DNA from: Oikopleura dioica | Taxonomy: Eukaryota > Animalia > Chordata | Assembly (NCBI GenBank): GCA_907165135.1 | Contig: OU015566.1 | Coordinates: 8,246,001-8,310,000 of the forward strand | DNA: 64,000 nt | Direction of reading: 5' to 3' | Part shown: positions 1 to 6,700 of the stretch, piece after piece | Numbering within the stretch: the first letter of the stretch is position 1 | How the letters are laid out: each line of letters opens with the position of its first letter | Made by a program: the position numbers and the translations under genes | The notes under the pieces: model-generated | What the model was told of the DNA's origin: nothing | The model's database searches: none | What the model saw: only the letters and a program-made list of their open reading frames with translations

Positions 1-360
1 ATTTAAAAAAGCAGAAAATAAAAATTTTAAATTTCGAATTCTTCCATCATCCAGATGTCTTCCACCAGACAAAGTCCTCCAAAAGTCCTCCAGGTGATCA
101 CATGATATTTATCAATTTATTTTAGATAAAATTTAGGATTTAATTTACTAAATTACAAAAATCATTATTCTTCCAGCATTTTATTGGTCTTCCAGCAAGA
201 AGCAAAAGGTCCTCCGGGTGATTCCTGATCGATCAGAGACATTGTCACTAAATTTTTTTATCTTAAATTGATCAGAATTTCGAGGCGCATCGAACTAGAC
301 TATTCACGACTTGATAAATGATGACATCTCGTCGATAAATGAGTTCGTTTTATTTGCAGT

Positions 361-403
361 GGCTTAACGTTTTCGGAACAGCAAAAGTTCCATCATCAGA
401 GCC
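361..403 (-). ncRNA. Hammerhead ribozyme copy in the inverted pLTR (minus strand)
   Basis: Exact reverse complement of 710-752. Confidence 0.8.
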
Positions 404-709
404 GAAGTCTTGGAGTTACTTGTAAACCTTCCAAAAACAGACAAACGTACCTTTTGGTGAAAACTGCAGAACTGATCAAGCTCCCAAAAACAACCATCCC
501 TCCAGATAGTGTTCTAGAGAATTTAACCCATTAAAAACTCGAAAATTTGTCAGAGGCTCCTACTCAAATTTTCGAGTTTTTAATGGGTTAAATTCTCTAG
601 AACACTATCTGGAGGGATGGTTGTTTTTGGGAGCTTGATCAGTTCTGCAGTTTTCACCAAAAGGTACGTTTGTCTGTTTTGGAAGGTTTACAAGTAACTC
701 CAAGACTTC

Positions 710-752
710 GGCTCTGATGATGGAACTTTTGCTGTTCCGAAAACGTTAAGCC
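710..752 (+). ncRNA. Minimal type I hammerhead ribozyme in 5' pLTR
   Basis: GGCT-CTGATGA-T-GGAAC(TTTTGCT)GTTCC-GAA-AACGTT-A^-AGCC. Stem I GGCT/AGCC, stem II GGAAC/GTTCC, palindromic stem III AACGTT, predicted cleavage after 748. Confidence 0.85.
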
Positions 753-785
753 ACTGCAAATAAAACGAACTCATTTATCGACGAG

Positions 786-3281
786 ATGTCATCATTTATC
801 AATTCTTATGGCAAGCGACATCAAGATTTCAAGTCCTTGGATACTCTTGCAAGTAAATTGCACAGGACCAGGCAAACGCTGCATTTCTTAGACAACTGCG
901 TTTCTGATCAAGTACTTCCAATTTTTACCAAAATCCCAATTCAGGTGGTAAAATTTTGTAAATGGGGTCGAAATAAAATTAAGCGGGAACGATTAAAAAT
1001 TTTAATTAATGAACAAAAAATCTGTAGTTACAAACTCGAGGAAATTCGAATATTATTCAATGAAAGTCTATCCAAATTTTTTGAGAAAGAAGGTATTGGT
1101 TGTGAAAAAGAAAAAATGATAATAATTTTAGATTTAGAAAATCGTGCGAGAATCCGAGATGAGGAACGCGACAGAAAAAGACAATTAAAATTCGGCAAAT
1201 TGAAAATTCAACAATCATTTCGGAAACCACTTAAATATGAAGTAAAAAATTTTTCAAAAAAACAAATTCCTACTAATATAATAAACATTCTAGAAAGAGG
1301 TTGGAAGGCCCCTCTTGGGGGGCGACCGCACTCGATAAATTTGCTCCAACAATTTGATAGCCTGATGGGCCATATAAAAAAATATGATCAATTTCAACAA
1401 CTCACACCAATGACTCAATTTCATTTAAAAGGCAGATTGACTTCGATTCACGAAAAATTAACTACTTGTTTCGGTAATGACAATAGTAACAGGATGATAA
1501 GACAGTATTTACGGGAAAACAGGGAAACTGTGTTTGTTTTATCGGACAAAGACTCAGTTATTTTAATTTTGGACCGTTCTCAATACGAGAATTCTATGCA
1601 TCGAGAATTTTCAGATGAGACAAAATTTATTCAATTAAATTCCGATCCAACTGAGGAGGACACTTTGGAAATGAGGCAAAATTTACGCAAAATGGAAAAA
1701 TTTGCGGACAAGAATTTTTTCAATAGAAATAAACCGGTTTCGAGGATAAAAGACGCATATGGACTTGGCAAATGCCATAAAGAAACTTTCGAGCAGGAGC
1801 TTAATATGAGAACTATAGTTTCAGCAAGAAATTCTGTTTGTGAAAATTTTCATAAAAATTTTTTGGCAAAATTATTAAATAATCTCAAAAGCAAATTCTC
1901 ACTTCGTGGGTCTAAAGAATTCGGCTTATGGTTTAAAGAGCAAAAATTCAATTTTGATGAAGTTGATTTTGCAAGTTTTGATATAGTAAAACTCTACCCA
2001 AGCTGCGATACAACTCACCTGATTCATCTCCTCTTGAAAACAATTTATGACGATAATTCGCCATCCAAAATGTTACCTCGATACCGGGATGAGAATAAAA
2101 GACTGCTAAGACCAATTCCAAAAAATGTTCTCCGACCAGTTTTGGATTCAGTTTTGAAAAAACTAACTGCATTTCGGTTTGCAGACAGAACTTATCGTCA
2201 GATATCGGGTCTATCAATGGGCGACAGTAGTTCTCCAAAATTAGCGGATTTCTATCTGTTTATGCTTGAGAAAGATAAGATCGAAAAACTTATTTCGGAA
2301 AAAGTGATTTTAGGCTATAAAAGATTTCTGGACGACACGATTGTCTTTTTTCGACGCGGTTCGTTCGAAAAAGTCAACGAAGTTTTTCAAAATTTGCATG
2401 AGTCTCTTAAAGTAACTGTTGAAAGGTCAAGTCCTGAAGGGATAAAATTTCTCGACTTTGTGGTCTATCCCTCGGAAACAAACACCCTGCAAATTCGTAA
2501 TCATCGAAAACACACTGTTCCAATGAATTTTGTAAATGACATTGCTCCTTTGTCATTGAAAAAGGGTATTCTAACGTCAGAATGTAAAAGGGCTTTATAT
2601 AAACACTCAGATCCGAAAACCCTGGGGGATGAGTTTATAGAGATAGAGGAGAAATATCTCGCCCAAGAATATCCCTTAGAAATGATCCGTGATGTAGAAA
2701 AGGTGGTGAAAGAGGGAAGGGTTGACAAGAAAGATTGGGAAGAGGAAAAAAGTTTGCATCCAGAGAGGAATTTTACAGTTTCTATCCCCTTTACGTCCCA
2801 AAGGGTGTCCCGGATAACGAGGGAAATGCGTAAGATTATCTCAACCTTTCTTCCCGAATTCAGCCTACATACGGCGTTGAGAACAGTATCGATGAGAAAC
2901 ACGATTATCTCCAATCTCTTACCTAAGCCGGAAGAGGAAAAGGCCATTAATGTGGTGTATTCCTTTGTCTGTAGTTGTGGGGAGGAGTATATTGGGGAAT
3001 CCGAAAATTTACTGATGAGAATTCGCGACCACGGGCAAAAATCAAAAGATACAGCTGTATACGCACACACTCAGTCATGTGAGGTTTTTCAGACAGGATT
3101 TAATGAAAAGTATCAGCAAAATAACCCGAAGTCCCGGTTTGAATATCTCAAATCGAAATTTACCCTGCTGCATAAGAATCTATCGTATGACAAACGAAAA
3201 CAAGTAGAGGGACTTGAAATTTCGTTGAAAAATCCCAGTTTAAACAAACAGATACAGCATAGGAAAATCTTTATTTTGTAA
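786..3281 (+). CDS. Penelope-type reverse transcriptase with C-terminal GIY-YIG endonuclease
   Basis: RT motifs FASFDIVKLYPS, YRQISGLSMGDSSSP, YKRFLDDT and FLD. GIY-YIG motifs VVYSFVCSCGEEYIGES...RIRDH...E..I....PSLN. Uninterrupted and intronless. Confidence 0.95.
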   Translation: MSSFINSYGKRHQDFKSLDTLASKLHRTRQTLHFLDNCVSDQVLPIFTKIPIQVVKFCKWGRNKIKRERLKILINEQKICSYKLEEIRILFNESLSKFFEKEGIGCEKEKMIIILDLENRARIRDEERDRKRQLKFGKLKIQQSFRKPLKYEVKNFSKKQIPTNIINILERGWKAPLGGRPHSINLLQQFDSLMGHIKKYDQFQQLTPMTQFHLKGRLTSIHEKLTTCFGNDNSNRMIRQYLRENRETVFVLSDKDSVILILDRSQYENSMHREFSDETKFIQLNSDPTEEDTLEMRQNLRKMEKFADKNFFNRNKPVSRIKDAYGLGKCHKETFEQELNMRTIVSARNSVCENFHKNFLAKLLNNLKSKFSLRGSKEFGLWFKEQKFNFDEVDFASFDIVKLYPSCDTTHLIHLLLKTIYDDNSPSKMLPRYRDENKRLLRPIPKNVLRPVLDSVLKKLTAFRFADRTYRQISGLSMGDSSSPKLADFYLFMLEKDKIEKLISEKVILGYKRFLDDTIVFFRRGSFEKVNEVFQNLHESLKVTVERSSPEGIKFLDFVVYPSETNTLQIRNHRKHTVPMNFVNDIAPLSLKKGILTSECKRALYKHSDPKTLGDEFIEIEEKYLAQEYPLEMIRDVEKVVKEGRVDKKDWEEEKSLHPERNFTVSIPFTSQRVSRITREMRKIISTFLPEFSLHTALRTVSMRNTIISNLLPKPEEEKAINVVYSFVCSCGEEYIGESENLLMRIRDHGQKSKDTAVYAHTQSCEVFQTGFNEKYQQNNPKSRFEYLKSKFTLLHKNLSYDKRKQVEGLEISLKNPSLNKQIQHRKIFIL

Positions 3282-3468
3282 TACCAGTCAGAGGCATTGT
3301 AAAATTGAGTAGGAGCCTCTGACAAATTTTCGAGTTTTTAATGGGTTAAATTCTCTAGAACACTATCTGGAGGGATGGTTGTTTTTGGGAGCTTGATCAG
3401 TTCTGCAGTTTTCACCAAAAGGTACGTTTGTCTGTTTTTGGAAGGTTTACAAGTAACTCCAAGACTTC

Positions 3469-3511
3469 GGCTCTGATGATGGAACTTTTGCTGTTCCGAA
3501 AACGTTAAGCC
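3469..3511 (+). ncRNA. Minimal type I hammerhead ribozyme in 3' pLTR
   Basis: Identical to 710-752. Predicted cleavage after 3507; AATAAA follows at 3518-3523. Confidence 0.85.
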
Positions 3512-3725
3512 ACTGCAAATAAAACGAACTTATTCACGACTTCTCAACTTTATCCACTCGAAAAATAGTTTTTTTGAGCTCTTTAGAGGGCGCTAGAATG
3601 ATGTCAGGTGGTTTTTTCAAAAAATTTTTTTCGGAAATATCATTTTTTCATGTTGAGCAATCACGTCACCAAAAATTAAGTTTCTACGACCCCTAGAAAA
3701 AAAGCTGATTTTTTGTGCGTTTACC

Positions 3726-6700
3726 CTAGATATTCGCATACCATCCCTTTTCCAGAACGGGGACGAACATTTCCGGGCGCTTTCGGATCTCCTCTTCGAA
3801 GTATTCGGACATTTCCAGGCACTTGTCGACCGACTGGGCAAATCCAGAGATGCCCTTTGCTCGCCAGCCAAGCCAGAGCTTGAAGGCGTCTGGTCTCCGG
3901 CCGCACTGAATTTTGCGAATTTGACATTTTAAATTTATGGAAAAGGATGAAAAACGTGATTTCACGATTTTCTTTTGAAACCAAAATCTTTGTTATTTTT
4001 TTGAAAGTCTTAAAACAGTATCCGATTTTATTAATTATCCATCATTGATAGACCTTATCGTTGTTGATTGATTTAGGAAGTGCGGGTAAAAGTACAAGAT
4101 TGATCAAAAAATCACGTGTTCGCTGAAATGTTCGCGAAAGAATTTTAGATTTTAAAATTTTAGAGGGATGATTTTTTGATTACCTGAATAGTCTTGTCGC
4201 CAGTGTCGTAACGGACATCGTAGTGCTTGTCAGGCTGGAATAGGTATTCGGCGGACATGTTGTTGCACGCACTCAGGAGACCCTTGATCAAGTTTATAGT
4301 TTAGAAATAACGATTTCCCAGCCTCTGGATCTCAAGAATCCATCGAGGAAGTCACAAGAATCCCAAAACGCCAAACACTCAGACATTCGGAAATATCTGG
4401 GGCGAAATTTCAGCATTGCCCGAACACGAAAATGATTATTCTAGCCCTTTTAACTTTCGCGGTCACCTACTAACCGGGGATATAGTTCGTGTACTTTCAA
4501 GTATTCAGTAAAAATGCACGAGATTGGCGTCGAGAACAGTTTAAATCACGTAAGAACCGATTTCTTACCTTGTGCCTCACTAGAAGTGCCGAGCATTGAA
4601 GAATAACACCCATCAGTTTATGCGGATTCCACGTGACCGAATCTGCAAGATGAACGCCTTGAGAAAAGGTTCGGAGGGAGAAATTCGATCACCGAGGGAA
4701 ATTATTTTTTGTCAATTTAATAATCCAGAAAATTGAAAATTGGGTGGCAAATCGTATCAATTCGCGATTGTCTTTTTTCGCGAACCCTTTTCCTTCAATG
4801 AGATTACGGTGAGTTTCGCTGACCATTACTGCGCCTCCCCAAGCTGCCTGAAAGAAGAAAAATATTTCTTGTTTTGGAACGCTTTGAGAAAATATATTCA
4901 GTTCCAGGTGTTATCCACTGCTTGTCGATTTCTAACTAAGTTATCCATTATTGATAATGGATGAAAATACTCTGTCTATTTACTCCAAAACGCGTCTTAT
5001 TCATGTTCGATCATTTCCACTACTAAGTGCGAGTATTATCAAAATAGAAGGTACATAAAAGTTGTCATTGTTTTGGGAATGTAGAATTCGCCATTGCACG
5101 TTTTTACGATCACGTTGGGTTCTCGAGTGGGGGATTCATAACCAGCTTGTTACGTAGTGTTTTGAACCGTGTAATAACACCTGTTGTGAATTTTCGCGAC
5201 AGCGGCTTAGTTTAAACATTTTTCGCAATAAAGACTTATATGAAATGATGCACCGGGCCTAATTGGCAATTTCTTACTAAGACAAGGTCACTGTTTGAGA
5301 TTTTATCGGCTGAAAAGCCACTTTCGAAGATAAGTGCATTTCTAAACTTACGTCAACGTGAAGCCAAATGTCGTGTTCTTGAGCTACTTTAGAAATCTCG
5401 GCGATTGGGTCGAAAGCACCCAGAACTGTTGTTCCAGCAGTAGCTTCATGTGGGATTCAGAAAAAGCGACGAAGTAATTCAATTAAAGTTTTAAAAGCAA
5501 AAAAATCCTACCTTCAAATTAAGAAAAAATAATGTTTAGCTTTCATGTTCTAGTTAAACTTTTATCAACCAAAATTGCGAAAAGGTCGCTCGCAGAATTG
5601 ACCGTTCGCTAATTACTTTTGCTTTAATTGATTTCTGATCCCGTCCCGATAACGAGGAATGGCTTCCATCCTTTGCCCTTGGCTTCTTCGATTCGGGCCC
5701 GCAAGTCATCCACACACATTGCGCCTCTAGAATTGTATGTAAATACAGGAAGCGATTGCTAGTCAGAATTTAGAAGATGCTGTAATTGCCCTCAATCTAA
5801 CCGTCTTGCTGATGAAGGTACTTTTTTTATGTTCAAATAAATAATTACATTGAAACCCGGCCATAAATTATCTTTGATGAATAGAAGCCCCCTTTTTTCT
5901 TTCTATACGTTCCCATAAAGAAAAACGCGCACTGCAAAAACAGTTGCTGGTTTTTAGAGTGAGCGCGTTTCGTGTTTTTCCAGTGAGTTATCTAACTGCA
6001 AATTTCCTTGGCGCGGGACTTCCGAGCTGCTAAAGGTAGCTATTTTTGTGAAACATTGTCGGAAAATTGACGGCCAAAGCGAGAAGAGTGTATCTTATCA
6101 GAGAAGAGCGTGATAAGTTTTAGTTCTCATCGGAACCATGGGTTCATAGCTACAAGTTATATTTGCGAAGCTTTTTCTCGGTGATAAGATATTTCATAAG
6201 CAGTGTTTTCAGTTTTGCTTACAATTTTTTCTCTTTTATGCAAGAGTTTCTAAATTGAATCTGGATCGGACACTCTGGACAACCAAAAAATTTATAAATG
6301 CTAATGGAATTTTTACTCAAGCAATTTTCGCAGTAGTGTTAATCAAGTGAAATTTCGCTATTTTGCGTTACCTTTTATCGACCTTCACGGCGACGACGTT
6401 ATTGAGTCCGATGCCGAGGATGATCCCGGGCCGCATGTTGGAATAGTGAGCGTCTGAAACAACCGTTACTGTTGGATTAGCGAGGCAGTAATAATATGGG
6501 GCGCAAATCACCGTGTGGTTAGAACACGTGAAAGCTCTCGATAAGGCACTCTAAGCTTGATTCACTTAGAAAAGGTTAGTTAGGCGAGAAGAAATGCACC
6601 GTGAAGAATCGAAAATCTAAACAGCTGATCTGAAATGGACCGAATTGGCAGTTTTTAGAATTTACTTTCACTACTTATTTCTTGAAGAAAATGCTTAGTT

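Follow-up and report, generated by a model that had tools for sequence, protein, structure and literature searches.

The element and its protein

The window analysed here, the whole 64,000-nt stretch of Oikopleura dioica contig OU015566.1 (positions 8,246,001 to 8,310,000), carries, at 311/313-3530, an intact and solitary insertion of a Penelope-like element (PLE; Table 1) of the canonical, endonuclease-bearing kind. Within a 12-bp TSD lie, in order, an inverted stub with a tail, a hairpin-centred junction, a pseudo-LTR (pLTR), an ORF for a reverse transcriptase (RT) and a GIY-YIG endonuclease (EN), a hairpin and a second pLTR. This is the layout of a PLE, with partial-tandem pLTRs, the optional inverted 5' copy, a one-sided tail of 30-40 bp and a variable TSD, and it shows no difference in kind from the typical element in the Figure 2 legend of Craig et al. 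(2021, PMC8557442), which has partial-tandem pLTRs with a hammerhead inside, an inverted 5'-truncated copy beside the upstream pLTR and, at a single end, a tail of 30-40 bp. What we add to the layout in that legend is that in full-length copies the tail is always on the stub and the junction always at a conserved hairpin.

Table 1. Features of the PLE insertion and its hammerhead motifs (positions within the window)
Feature	Position	Strand	Remarks
Left TSD copy	301-312	.	TATTCACGACTT; last 2 nt possibly the element's own
'Tail', outer end of inverted stub	311-341	-	reverse complement of 772-802; putative second RT start site
Inverted 5' stub	342-564	-	reverse-complement pLTR plus 15-22 nt of the 3' UTR hairpin
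Third hammerhead motif, within stub	361-403	-	pattern match 365-399, and covariance model
5' pLTR, direct copy	565-771	+	direct repeats
5' hammerhead	710-752	+	predicted cut 748/749, 37 nt upstream of ATG
Helix I, 5' strand	710-713		GGCT
Core C3-A9	714-720		CTGATGA; conserved C3 U4 G5 A6 N7 G8 A9 present
Extra T	721		U after A9
Helix II	722-726 / 734-738		GGAAC/GTTCC; 7-nt loop
Core G12-A14	739-741		GAA; G12 A13 A14 present
Helix III palindrome	742-747		AACGTT (A15.1...U16.1); A15.1-U16.1 pair present
Cleavage-site residue A17	748		triplet UUA; H17 is any base but G
Helix I, 3' strand	749-752		AGCC
AATAAA	759-764	+	11-16 nt 3' of cut, 7 nt before short end; repeated at 3518-3523
ORF, RT + GIY-YIG	786-3281	+	831 aa, uninterrupted by stops
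Conserved hairpin	3287-3323	+	6 nt past stop codon; stem 3287-3295 / 3315-3323
3' pLTR	3323-3530	+	ends at short end (equivalent to 771)
3' hammerhead	3469-3511	+	predicted cut 3507/3508
Right TSD copy	3531-3542	.	identical 12 nt to 301-312

The pLTRs are matched by direct repeats (565-689 / 3323-3447 and 677-775 / 3436-3534) and the stub by an inverted repeat of 99% complementarity (338-571 / 3301-3534), within which 550-571 pairs with 3301-3322. The tail is supported by a further inverted repeat (308-436 / 677-805), and its 31 nt are missing from the 3' pLTR. Strong but sub-threshold miRNA-like Rfam matches at 454-659 reflect merely the ~240-bp inverted repeat of stub and pLTR. No tandem repeats were found in positions 1-4500. 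The hairpin past the stop codon (MFE -17.9 kcal/mol, z -4.3) marks both boundaries, in that the pLTR starts at its 3' base and the junction between stub and direct copy falls inside it. Its closing pair covaries in families A-D (G-C, C-G, A-T), and other families have unrelated 11- and 16-bp stems at the same position. AATAAA or a close variant occurs at the equivalent place, 7-12 nt before the short end, in most families examined.

The single ORF encodes the RT followed by the GIY-YIG endonuclease, and the absence of a Cys-rich linker between the two suggests the Penelope/Poseidon type. In this copy the GIY-YIG match (residues 723-786, E 0.0037) falls short of the Pfam cut-off; among five family members Pfam recognised GIY-YIG in four (best 2.7e-6) and RVT_1 in three (best 5.3e-5). 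A profile of the family matches retron-type reverse transcriptase chains (PDB 5hhj, E 1e-4), and a PDB search with the single ORF sequence gave no match. A word-based protein search returned one relative (P0001, 53% identity), and the neighbours in a protein atlas, useful as a lead only, carry RVT_1, GIY-YIG and HTH_animal. The dN/dS ratio between families is ~0.11-0.13.

A second copy (L002), 99.5% identical, lies at another locus with other flanks and its own AT-rich duplication. This and the intact TSD make the element look young, in keeping with the first-pass annotation, which had described it as intact and apparently active.

Hammerhead motifs and their conservation

Both pLTRs carry the same 43-nt motif, letter for letter, and on sequence grounds each pLTR copy is the bearer of a minimal type-I hammerhead in which helix III is only a palindrome. 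The first-pass annotation had reported two identical minimal hammerheads with a palindromic helix III, a UUA triplet and an extra U, bracketing the whole RT ORF, and the sequence comparison, a pattern search with shuffled controls and covariation all bear this out; our recalculation of the predicted cut sites, and of the 2759-nt unit between them (749-3507, with the entire ORF inside), gave the same figures. A pattern of core, helix II and GAAAACGTTA matched three times in the window versus 0 times in 100 shuffles. The third match, on the minus strand within the inverted stub, is absent from the earlier description and was also placed there (contig 8246356-8246407) by our covariance model R1.

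Searching with the Rfam hammerhead models, a check that the first-pass annotation had proposed, gave no hammerhead family, whether at the gathering score or with the cut-off relaxed to E<=10 on stretches of 3.4 kb and of 86 nt. Such a miss is expected because the motif has no helix III hairpin and contains an inserted base; a relaxed descriptor was likewise required in the 2014 study of PLE hammerheads (PMC4209133). Since helix III is just a palindrome, an active site would be possible only by the pairing of two copies. Nearest-neighbour energies favour an inactive fold over the active hammerhead: a rod-like hairpin that would sequester U4-G8 is predicted at -14.3 versus -10.2 kcal/mol for helices I and II, and for two copies a plain duplex (-30.6) would be preferred to the double hammerhead (-26.1).

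A covariance model built from 11 hammerhead variants of this genome recovered at least 120 copies. Across the 11 variants 89% of paired cells are indeed paired, against 13-51% in slid controls, and double changes occur in 6 of the 11 pairs, values that 0 of 500 shuffles reached; changes on both sides affect three of the four pairs of helix I and two of the five pairs of helix II. Further stems among the parsed hammerheads are GTTT/AAAC, GGGA/TCCC, GGAG/CTCC and GGCAC/GTGCC. The catalytic core is invariant in 11/11 aligned variants and in 19/21 parsed sequences, the other two being degenerate copies without GAAA, and the extra base is U or A in every parsed hammerhead. Helix III exists as four palindromes, AACGTT in this element and AGATCT, AGCT or ACGCGT elsewhere, all of them self-complementary. 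Position 17 is A, C or U across families and G in one 3' copy alone (L065). At least six diverged families of this genome thus retain the same architecture, with helices I, II and III varying by compensation. The motif is thus under selection, for these six or more families have all kept the core, the extra unpaired base, a helix III that is palindromic and, at position 17, a base other than G.

The arrangement of the motifs is conserved as well. Among the best 120 matches we counted nine triplets, 24 head-to-head pairs and no tail-to-tail pairs, and tandem arrays appeared neither among these 120 matches nor among DNA matches in the genome. A minus-plus-plus triplet, with stubs of 237-241 nt and pLTRs of 204-208 nt, is common to families A-D, and the triplet layout recurs at another three loci that represent two additional hammerhead types.

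Insertion ends and the making of the template

All 16 of the 16 insertions have a short end, a tail end and a TSD, with the tail on one side only; in full-length copies it is the inverted stub that bears the tail, in nine cases of nine, and the 3' pLTR never does. Short ends lie 23-25 nt, and tail ends ~44-56 nt, 3' of the cleavage site, and the RT start sites that we infer for this element lie 23 and ~54 nt 3' of the cut. Because the start sites are 3' of the cut, as is every insertion's end, cDNA synthesis would begin downstream and cross the cut, and for the same reason the linear unit 749-3507 would be unable to template a full copy. The interpretation given by the first-pass annotation is borne out as to genuine hammerheads of the PLE-pLTR type in an intact, young-looking element, but not, in the form given, as to excision of the unit and its circularisation.

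No young copy shows a difference between its 5' and 3' pLTRs, while families diverge by 9-39%. C and D, for example, have pLTRs that differ at 9% of positions, yet within any one insertion of these families the three copies match each other at 100%, and a C/T difference at 698 between L001 and L002 is common to all three pLTR copies. Within each insertion, the stub and both pLTRs thus appear to have been copied from one source. Junctions differ within two pairs of sister copies (L001/L002 and L004/L005), which indicates that they are rebuilt at each insertion. We rejected inheritance of the whole composite via a read-through transcript, given these sister junctions and the lineage-specific changes common to three pLTR copies. 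We also discarded a snap-back model with extension on the direct arm, which predicts a loop orientation opposite to that of this copy. In L064 and L065 the junction is a complete hairpin in direct orientation, so a transcript starting left of the hairpin would hold hairpin, pLTR and tail contiguously; the 15-22 nt of 3' UTR in the stub are therefore no proof of a tandem or circular template. Insertion anatomy alone would not tell copying of a circle from copying of a linear RNA with strand transfer.

From what RNA, then, is the element copied? If stub and pLTRs have a single source, the template RNA should hold most of the pLTR once, and its 5' end should lie inside the pLTR. The template RNA thus probably begins within the pLTR, and the hammerhead cut is possibly the origin of that end. 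The account that we tentatively prefer, holding it to be somewhat short of an even prospect, is of a linear RNA with a pLTR-internal 5' end, most likely made by hammerhead cleavage, that undergoes strand transfer. Under this account both target strands would prime cDNA synthesis, one cDNA starting from the short site (the equivalent of 771, at 3530) and the other from the tail site (~802); both would cross a hammerhead cleavage site and stop at the 3' UTR hairpin, whose self-complementary stem would join the two same-sense cDNAs head to head. The likeliest origin of the template's 5' end would be the cut at 748/749, with the 5' hammerhead pairing either with its 3' counterpart or with one on another RNA, probably aided by the element's protein. 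The product would be an RNA that starts at 749, stops at the short end and is terminally redundant over 23 nt, and a cDNA reaching 749 could transfer to the 3' pLTR, much as in retroviral strong-stop transfer, and so restore the upstream pLTR. Ligation into a circle would be a less likely route to the same continuity, and the asymmetry of the tail and the conserved AATAAA favour the linear RNA with strand transfer over the circle. An RNA 5' end placed at 749 is nevertheless our deduction, and a transcription start nearby would explain single-source pLTRs equally well, without cleavage.

Several observations count against the linear, strand-transferring RNA. Some come from the Poseidon element PAc of Anolis carolinensis, which alone among PLEs has been reconstituted in vitro (Frangieh et al. 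2024, PMC11167929). There, mutating the hammerhead leaves insertion in vitro normal, the RNA that is used is mainly unprocessed, and RNA-seq gave no ends at the cut. PAc also needs the first 172 nt of its ORF, with which a start at the short site of the 3' pLTR, where no ORF lies downstream, clashes. Symmetric dimer cleavage would remove the short site with the 3' cut, PLE hammerheads are poor cleavers in vitro and the predicted energies are unfavourable. These same PAc results also support a rival that we regard as somewhat unlikely, namely that the template is an uncleaved RNA of more than unit length and that the hammerhead has no part in making it, acting elsewhere instead, for example in trimming read-through transcripts for translation, in limiting element RNA or late in the cycle. 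Every arm of every insertion does contain an uncut hammerhead and 23-56 nt beyond it, and the active fold is not the predicted minimum. However, it is tandem arrays that give PAc its multi-unit mRNAs, and arrays of that kind are what the best 120 matches and the DNA matches here lack. A linear transcript of a solitary copy would, moreover, carry two separately inherited pLTRs, yet the 5' and 3' pLTRs of young copies are the same, and conservation of the catalytic core and palindrome would be left unexplained.

A template that is cleaved could also be a circle. If two copies on one transcript paired and both were cut, the 2759-nt unit 749-3507 might be ligated into an RT-encoding circle on which more than one round of reverse transcription would yield pLTR-ORF-pLTR. 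Such a circle would give single-source pLTRs. It would also bring both start sites (771 and 802), and the 5' part of the ORF that RT binding requires in PAc, downstream of the whole ORF, so that a solitary copy could regenerate itself. Circles of 170-400 nt do accumulate in the case of the related retrozymes, which are non-coding (PMC7229834). We nonetheless judge the circle distinctly improbable. Both start sites would be equally open to the long cDNA, yet the long arm begins at the short site in 9/9 full-length copies, and the conserved AATAAA, 7-12 nt upstream of the short end, suggests that a linear RNA ends there. With rolling reverse transcription one would expect pLTRs of varying length and multi-unit tandems, whereas full-length copies all stop at the hairpin, at ~1.07 units, and no circle is reported for a coding PLE in the literature cited here. 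The broader proposition, that for solitary PLEs the 2759-nt unit joined end to end, whether as an RT-encoding circle or by template jumping, is the obligatory template for rebuilding two pLTRs and a stub from a single copy, seems to us improbable. Least credible of all, and in our view very improbable, is a motif that resembles a hammerhead but is non-catalytic in this lineage, kept in the pLTR as a signal for protein binding or at the DNA level. The missing Rfam match, the extra core base, a helix I of only 3-4 bp and the predicted competing hairpin would fit this, but the positions essential for catalysis are invariant across families that are ~40% different elsewhere, position 17 is not G in intact copies, the helices covary and the palindrome switches sequence while staying a palindrome. 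In addition, an extra base and a minimal helix III are documented in PLE hammerheads that cleave as dimers or with protein (PMC4209133, PMC11167929).

Known systems and the role of the hammerhead

The solitary tunicate PLE with its dimer-type hammerheads belongs to a known class of transposon and ribozyme. Action as a dimer, excision of a unit and its circularisation into a template were already proposed by Cervera & de la Peña in 2014 (PMC4209133, Discussion), and the proposal is repeated in a 2019 review (PMC6765202); reading the locus as excision to a circular RNA is a restatement of that hypothesis and not new. In the hammerheads of the 2014 study one base 5' of helix II is left unpaired; direct pairs are spaced by ~3 kb and opposite-strand pairs by 100-700 bp, and cleavage in vitro is poor, even as dimers; dimer cleavage of minimal PLE hammerheads is attributed to Lunse, Weinberg & Breaker, as cited in PMC6765202. 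Ours are alike in being type-I, in both pLTRs ~3 kb apart, with a palindromic helix III, a short helix I, the base unpaired 5' of helix II and extra opposite-strand pairs, as well as in the proposed dimer mode and self-cleaved, possibly circular template. They differ in a helix II of 3-5 bp, against 7-8 bp in the Schistosoma families, and in that copies are solitary here and tandem there; the main text of that study does not name a larvacean tunicate host.

PAc shares with this element the ORF for an RT with a C-terminal GIY-YIG, the hammerhead at the pLTR-ORF junction and the AT-rich target. In PAc there are two RT start sites, the distance between them being the tail, both target strands are extended and the hammerhead is protein-assisted (PMC11167929); two start sites one tail apart and use of both target strands are likewise what the insertions suggest here. 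However, the cut is 26 nt inside the ORF in PAc and 37 nt upstream of the ATG here, the start sites are 111-118 nt into the PAc ORF and putatively at -15 and +17 relative to the A of the ATG here, and PAc occurs in tandem arrays, none of which were seen in this genome. Retrozymes in general are non-autonomous and non-coding, ~170-1000 nt long, bounded by hammerheads and usually tandem; the metazoan non-LTR retrozymes (Cervera & de la Pena 2020, PMC7229834) measure 170-400 nt and are tandem repeats with mostly canonical hammerheads and demonstrated circles, whereas the unit here is 2759 nt, encodes RT/EN, is solitary, without tandem arrays, and has no known circle. The HDV-like ribozymes with which R2 and other non-LTR elements begin at their 5' end (PMC6765202) are similar in placing a self-cleaving RNA just upstream of the ORF, where it could set the RNA 5' end, but they are of another class, act as monomers and occur once per element, with no repeat 3'.

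The role of PLE hammerheads in vivo has been a question since 2014. In PAc the hammerhead was dispensable in vitro, on junction-spanning templates of tandem type (PMC11167929). O. dioica, of which laboratory strains are maintained, has a 64-Mb genome in which we found only about nine full-length copies, with one intact ORF in this family. As no tandem arrays were seen and copies are few, an RNA or cDNA joining the ORF 3' end, the pLTR and the ORF 5' end could not be genomic read-through, and O. dioica would offer a cleaner natural test of the hammerhead's role than PAc. In the annotation of the assembly PLEs are almost absent and 44% of repeats are unclassified (PMC8008620); despite that annotation, PLEs are present and appear to have been recently active in this O. 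dioica assembly.

Layout and copies of the element

The insertion in the window is a new example of an already known type of Penelope-like retrotransposon (PLE), and its layout, obtained from repeat analysis and alignment of the repeat copies, is that drawn as typical in the available portion of Craig et al. (2021, PMC8557442). Searched singly, the ORF gave a weak GIY-YIG match (E 0.0037) and no match in the PDB; a profile of the ORF and four relatives (alignment A1) matched reverse-transcriptase chains (5hhj, E 1e-4), with RVT_1 in three of the five members, GIY-YIG in four of the five, and the catalytic Asp residues D399 and D516-D517 invariant. Its Atlas neighbours are animal proteins in which RVT_1, GIY-YIG and HTH_animal domains occur; they serve as a lead only. 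Between families dN/dS is ~0.11-0.13. Because a Pyridoxal_deC exon (Pfam PF00282, E 1e-12, covering positions 311-363 of the 375-position profile) is adjacent on the minus strand, the retrotransposon lies antisense to a PLP-decarboxylase gene, either inside an intron or just past its 3' end.

Coordinates of the element, its motifs and related loci (window positions unless a locus is named)
Feature	Location	Strand	Comment
Left TSD	301-312
Inverted stub	311/313-564	-	reverse complement of pLTR, outer 31-nt tail, inner 15-22 nt of 3' UTR
Stub + 5' pLTR inverted repeat	311-802		~240 bp
Third hammerhead, core	365-399	-
Direct 5' pLTR	565-771	+
5' hammerhead	710-752		cut 748/749
AATAAA	759-764; 3518-3523		between cut and short end
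Sequence of stub tail	772-802		31 nt, at stub outer end
ORF	786-3281	+	831 codons
3' UTR (post-stop) hairpin	3287-3323
Second pLTR	3323-3530	+
3' hammerhead	3469-3511		cut 3507/3508
Right TSD	3531-3542
Pyridoxal_deC exon	3729-3923	-
Post-stop hairpin, other loci	L005:4067-4104; L010:4245-4282; L064:3536-3584; L065:3541-3596
826-aa ORF locus	L064:1041-3521		G000:C4:4738240-4740720; palindrome AGATCT
819-aa ORF locus	L065:1094-3553		G000:C5:622193-624652; palindrome AGCT
Family C stub-pLTR gap	L012:3854-4427		G000:C4:5196986-5197559

The genome searched (G000, a 64.28-Mb assembly in 19 pieces, in which the window is C4:8246001-8310000) yielded nine full-length PLE layouts. Another copy, at C4:3.13 Mb, shares 99.5% identity across the whole composite; its flanks are unrelated, it has its own AT-rich duplication, and its ORF is interrupted by a frameshift. 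Among the family-A copies fetched, only that in the window has an open ORF. Two further families have open ORFs, of 826 aa (C4:4.738 Mb) and 819 aa (C5:0.622 Mb), and both loci carry a complete hammerhead triplet; in the latter the cleavage-site base is G in the 3' copy and C in the other two. At a family C locus the gap between stub and 5' pLTR is 574 nt rather than the usual 15-28 nt, and a 46-nt inverted repeat inside it makes a secondary insertion at this junction possible.

Hammerhead motifs

Reading of positions 1-4500 bore out, base for base, the claim of the first-pass annotation that two identical hammerhead motifs bracket the whole RT ORF. Each 43-nt motif runs GGCT, CTGATGA, an extra T, GGAAC-loop-GTTCC, GAA, the palindrome AACGTT, A and AGCC, and the predicted cuts delimit a 2759-nt unit enclosing the entire ORF. 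A pattern search recovered a third identical copy in the stub and no match in 100 shuffles. The Rfam comparison that the annotation had suggested, on the other hand, listed no hammerhead family at any stringency, even with an 86-nt query at E<=10, because canonical models are set against a motif without a helix III hairpin and with an inserted base; according to the accessible text of Cervera and de la Pena (2014, PMC4209133), discovery of the minimal PLE hammerheads likewise required a relaxed descriptor.

Comparative evidence is positive for hammerheads beyond mere look-alikes. The segment surrounding the ribozyme is 86-89% identical between families, against 65-70% for the rest of the sequence. 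When eleven variants were aligned to the hammerhead fold, 89% of cells were paired (slid controls, 13-51%) and 6 of 11 pairs had changes on both sides, a covariation score matched by none of 500 shuffles; a model built from these variants finds at least 120 genomic copies. Parsing of 20 more copies yielded helix II as GGAAC/GTTCC, GGTC/GACC, GGAG/CTCC, GGAAT/ATTCC, GGAC/GTCC, GGTT/AACC, GGC/GCC, GGCC/GGCC or GGCAC/GTGCC, and helix I as GGCT/AGCC, GCT/AGC, TGA/TCA, GTTT/AAAC, GTTA/TAAC, GGGA/TCCC or GGGG/CCCC; one unpaired U or A follows A9 in every case, and position H17 holds A, C or U. Helix III changes in sequence yet is always palindromic (AACGTT, AGATCT, AGCT, ACGCGT), as predicted for a dimer-dependent ribozyme. 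Among the 120 best matches genome-wide there were nine minus-plus-plus triplets, 24 head-to-head pairs, and neither tail-to-tail pairs nor tandem arrays.

Insertion ends and the template RNA

In all 16 insertions with both ends read, the short end lies 23-25 nt past the cut, the tail end 18-33 nt beyond that, and a 9-12 bp TSD flanks both. They are consistent with findings on the Anolis Poseidon element PAc, in which both target strands are cut and extended and reverse transcription begins at two sites within the RNA, a tail length apart (Frangieh et al., 2024, PMC11167929, as far as available). Since the ends are 3' of the cut, cDNA synthesis would start there and run across it, and a linear excised unit cannot, on this sequence evidence, template a full copy. 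The first-pass interpretation is partly supported: the hammerheads and the element hold up, whereas the linear unit 749-3507 would not suffice as a template. Its excision and circularisation proposal is a restatement of a published hypothesis: the Discussion of Cervera and de la Pena (2014), in the portion available, proposes precursor self-cleavage and ligation to circles templating reverse transcription beyond unit length, a proposal repeated in a 2019 review (PMC6765202). The same portion reports minimal hammerheads in both pLTRs ~3 kb apart, opposite-strand pairs 100-700 bp apart, an unpaired base 5' of helix II, and action as dimers.

What RNA, then, is copied? Within each insertion the three pLTR copies either match exactly or differ by single-copy changes only, while families diverge by 9-39%, and a C/T change at 698 occurs in all three copies of one of the two near-identical insertions and in none of the other's. 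The pLTR would therefore be copied from one source each generation, so that the template has most of it once and its 5' end inside it. Three models satisfy this and the ends 3' of the cut: a circular RNA, template jumping that joins RNAs of unit length, and a linear RNA. The last would run from ~749 to the short end, its 23-nt terminal redundancy permitting retrovirus-like strand transfer, and it is favoured by the AATAAA position, the fixed ~1.07-unit length and the tail always being on the stub (9/9 full-length copies, with the long arm from the short site). The AATAAA, 7-12 nt before the short end and kept or closely varied in most families examined, may be the element's polyadenylation signal, in which case the mRNA would have its 3' end where reverse transcription is inferred to begin.

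A linear RNA trimmed by the ribozyme, followed by strand transfer, is accordingly our leading reading, held with rather less than even confidence. A transcription start near 749 would serve as well as a cut, and the sole argument for the latter is that the ribozyme is conserved. That the template is uncleaved and the ribozyme acts elsewhere is somewhat less likely, although in PAc, within the available text, hammerhead mutants insert normally in vitro and RNA-seq ends at the cut are absent. A circular template, compatible with single-source pLTRs, is much more doubtful; the small retrozyme circles on record all come from non-coding units of 170-400 nt (PMC7229834). Most improbable is a non-catalytic hammerhead-like motif, set against the covariation. 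The predicted single-copy minimum is a rod pairing U4-G8 with C15.3-A17 (-14.3 vs -10.2 kcal/mol), and a plain duplex wins over the double hammerhead (-30.6 vs -26.1 kcal/mol); these modelled energies fit reports that PLE hammerheads are weakly active in vitro and depend on protein, the PAc ribozyme needing protein (PMC11167929, available part).

The hairpin junction and the O. dioica repeats

In every family examined, stub and direct copy meet at the hairpin after the stop codon, which marks the pLTR 5' edge and the centre of their inverted repeat; we found no description of it in the available portions of PLE papers. Its stem is constant in families A-D with a covarying closing pair, whereas the site is occupied in other families by stems of 11 and 16 bp unrelated to this one; z-scores are -2.7 to -6.7. 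Sister copies differ at the junction, which indicates that the junction is rebuilt at each insertion. A self-complementary stem would allow head-to-head annealing of two same-sense cDNAs, and the hairpin may be what joins them. The inverted repeat (97-99% complementary) gives strong, though sub-threshold, Rfam matches resembling miRNA precursors (MIR447, 94.6 bits; gathering score, 200). Any transcript reading through this region would fold into a long hairpin in which the 5' hammerhead is buried, and might enter small-RNA pathways.

The O. dioica assembly paper describes Penelope-like elements as almost absent and 44% of repeats as unclassified (PMC8008620). Given at least 120 minimal hammerheads and the full-length PLEs in this genome, some of those unclassified repeats are probably PLEs.
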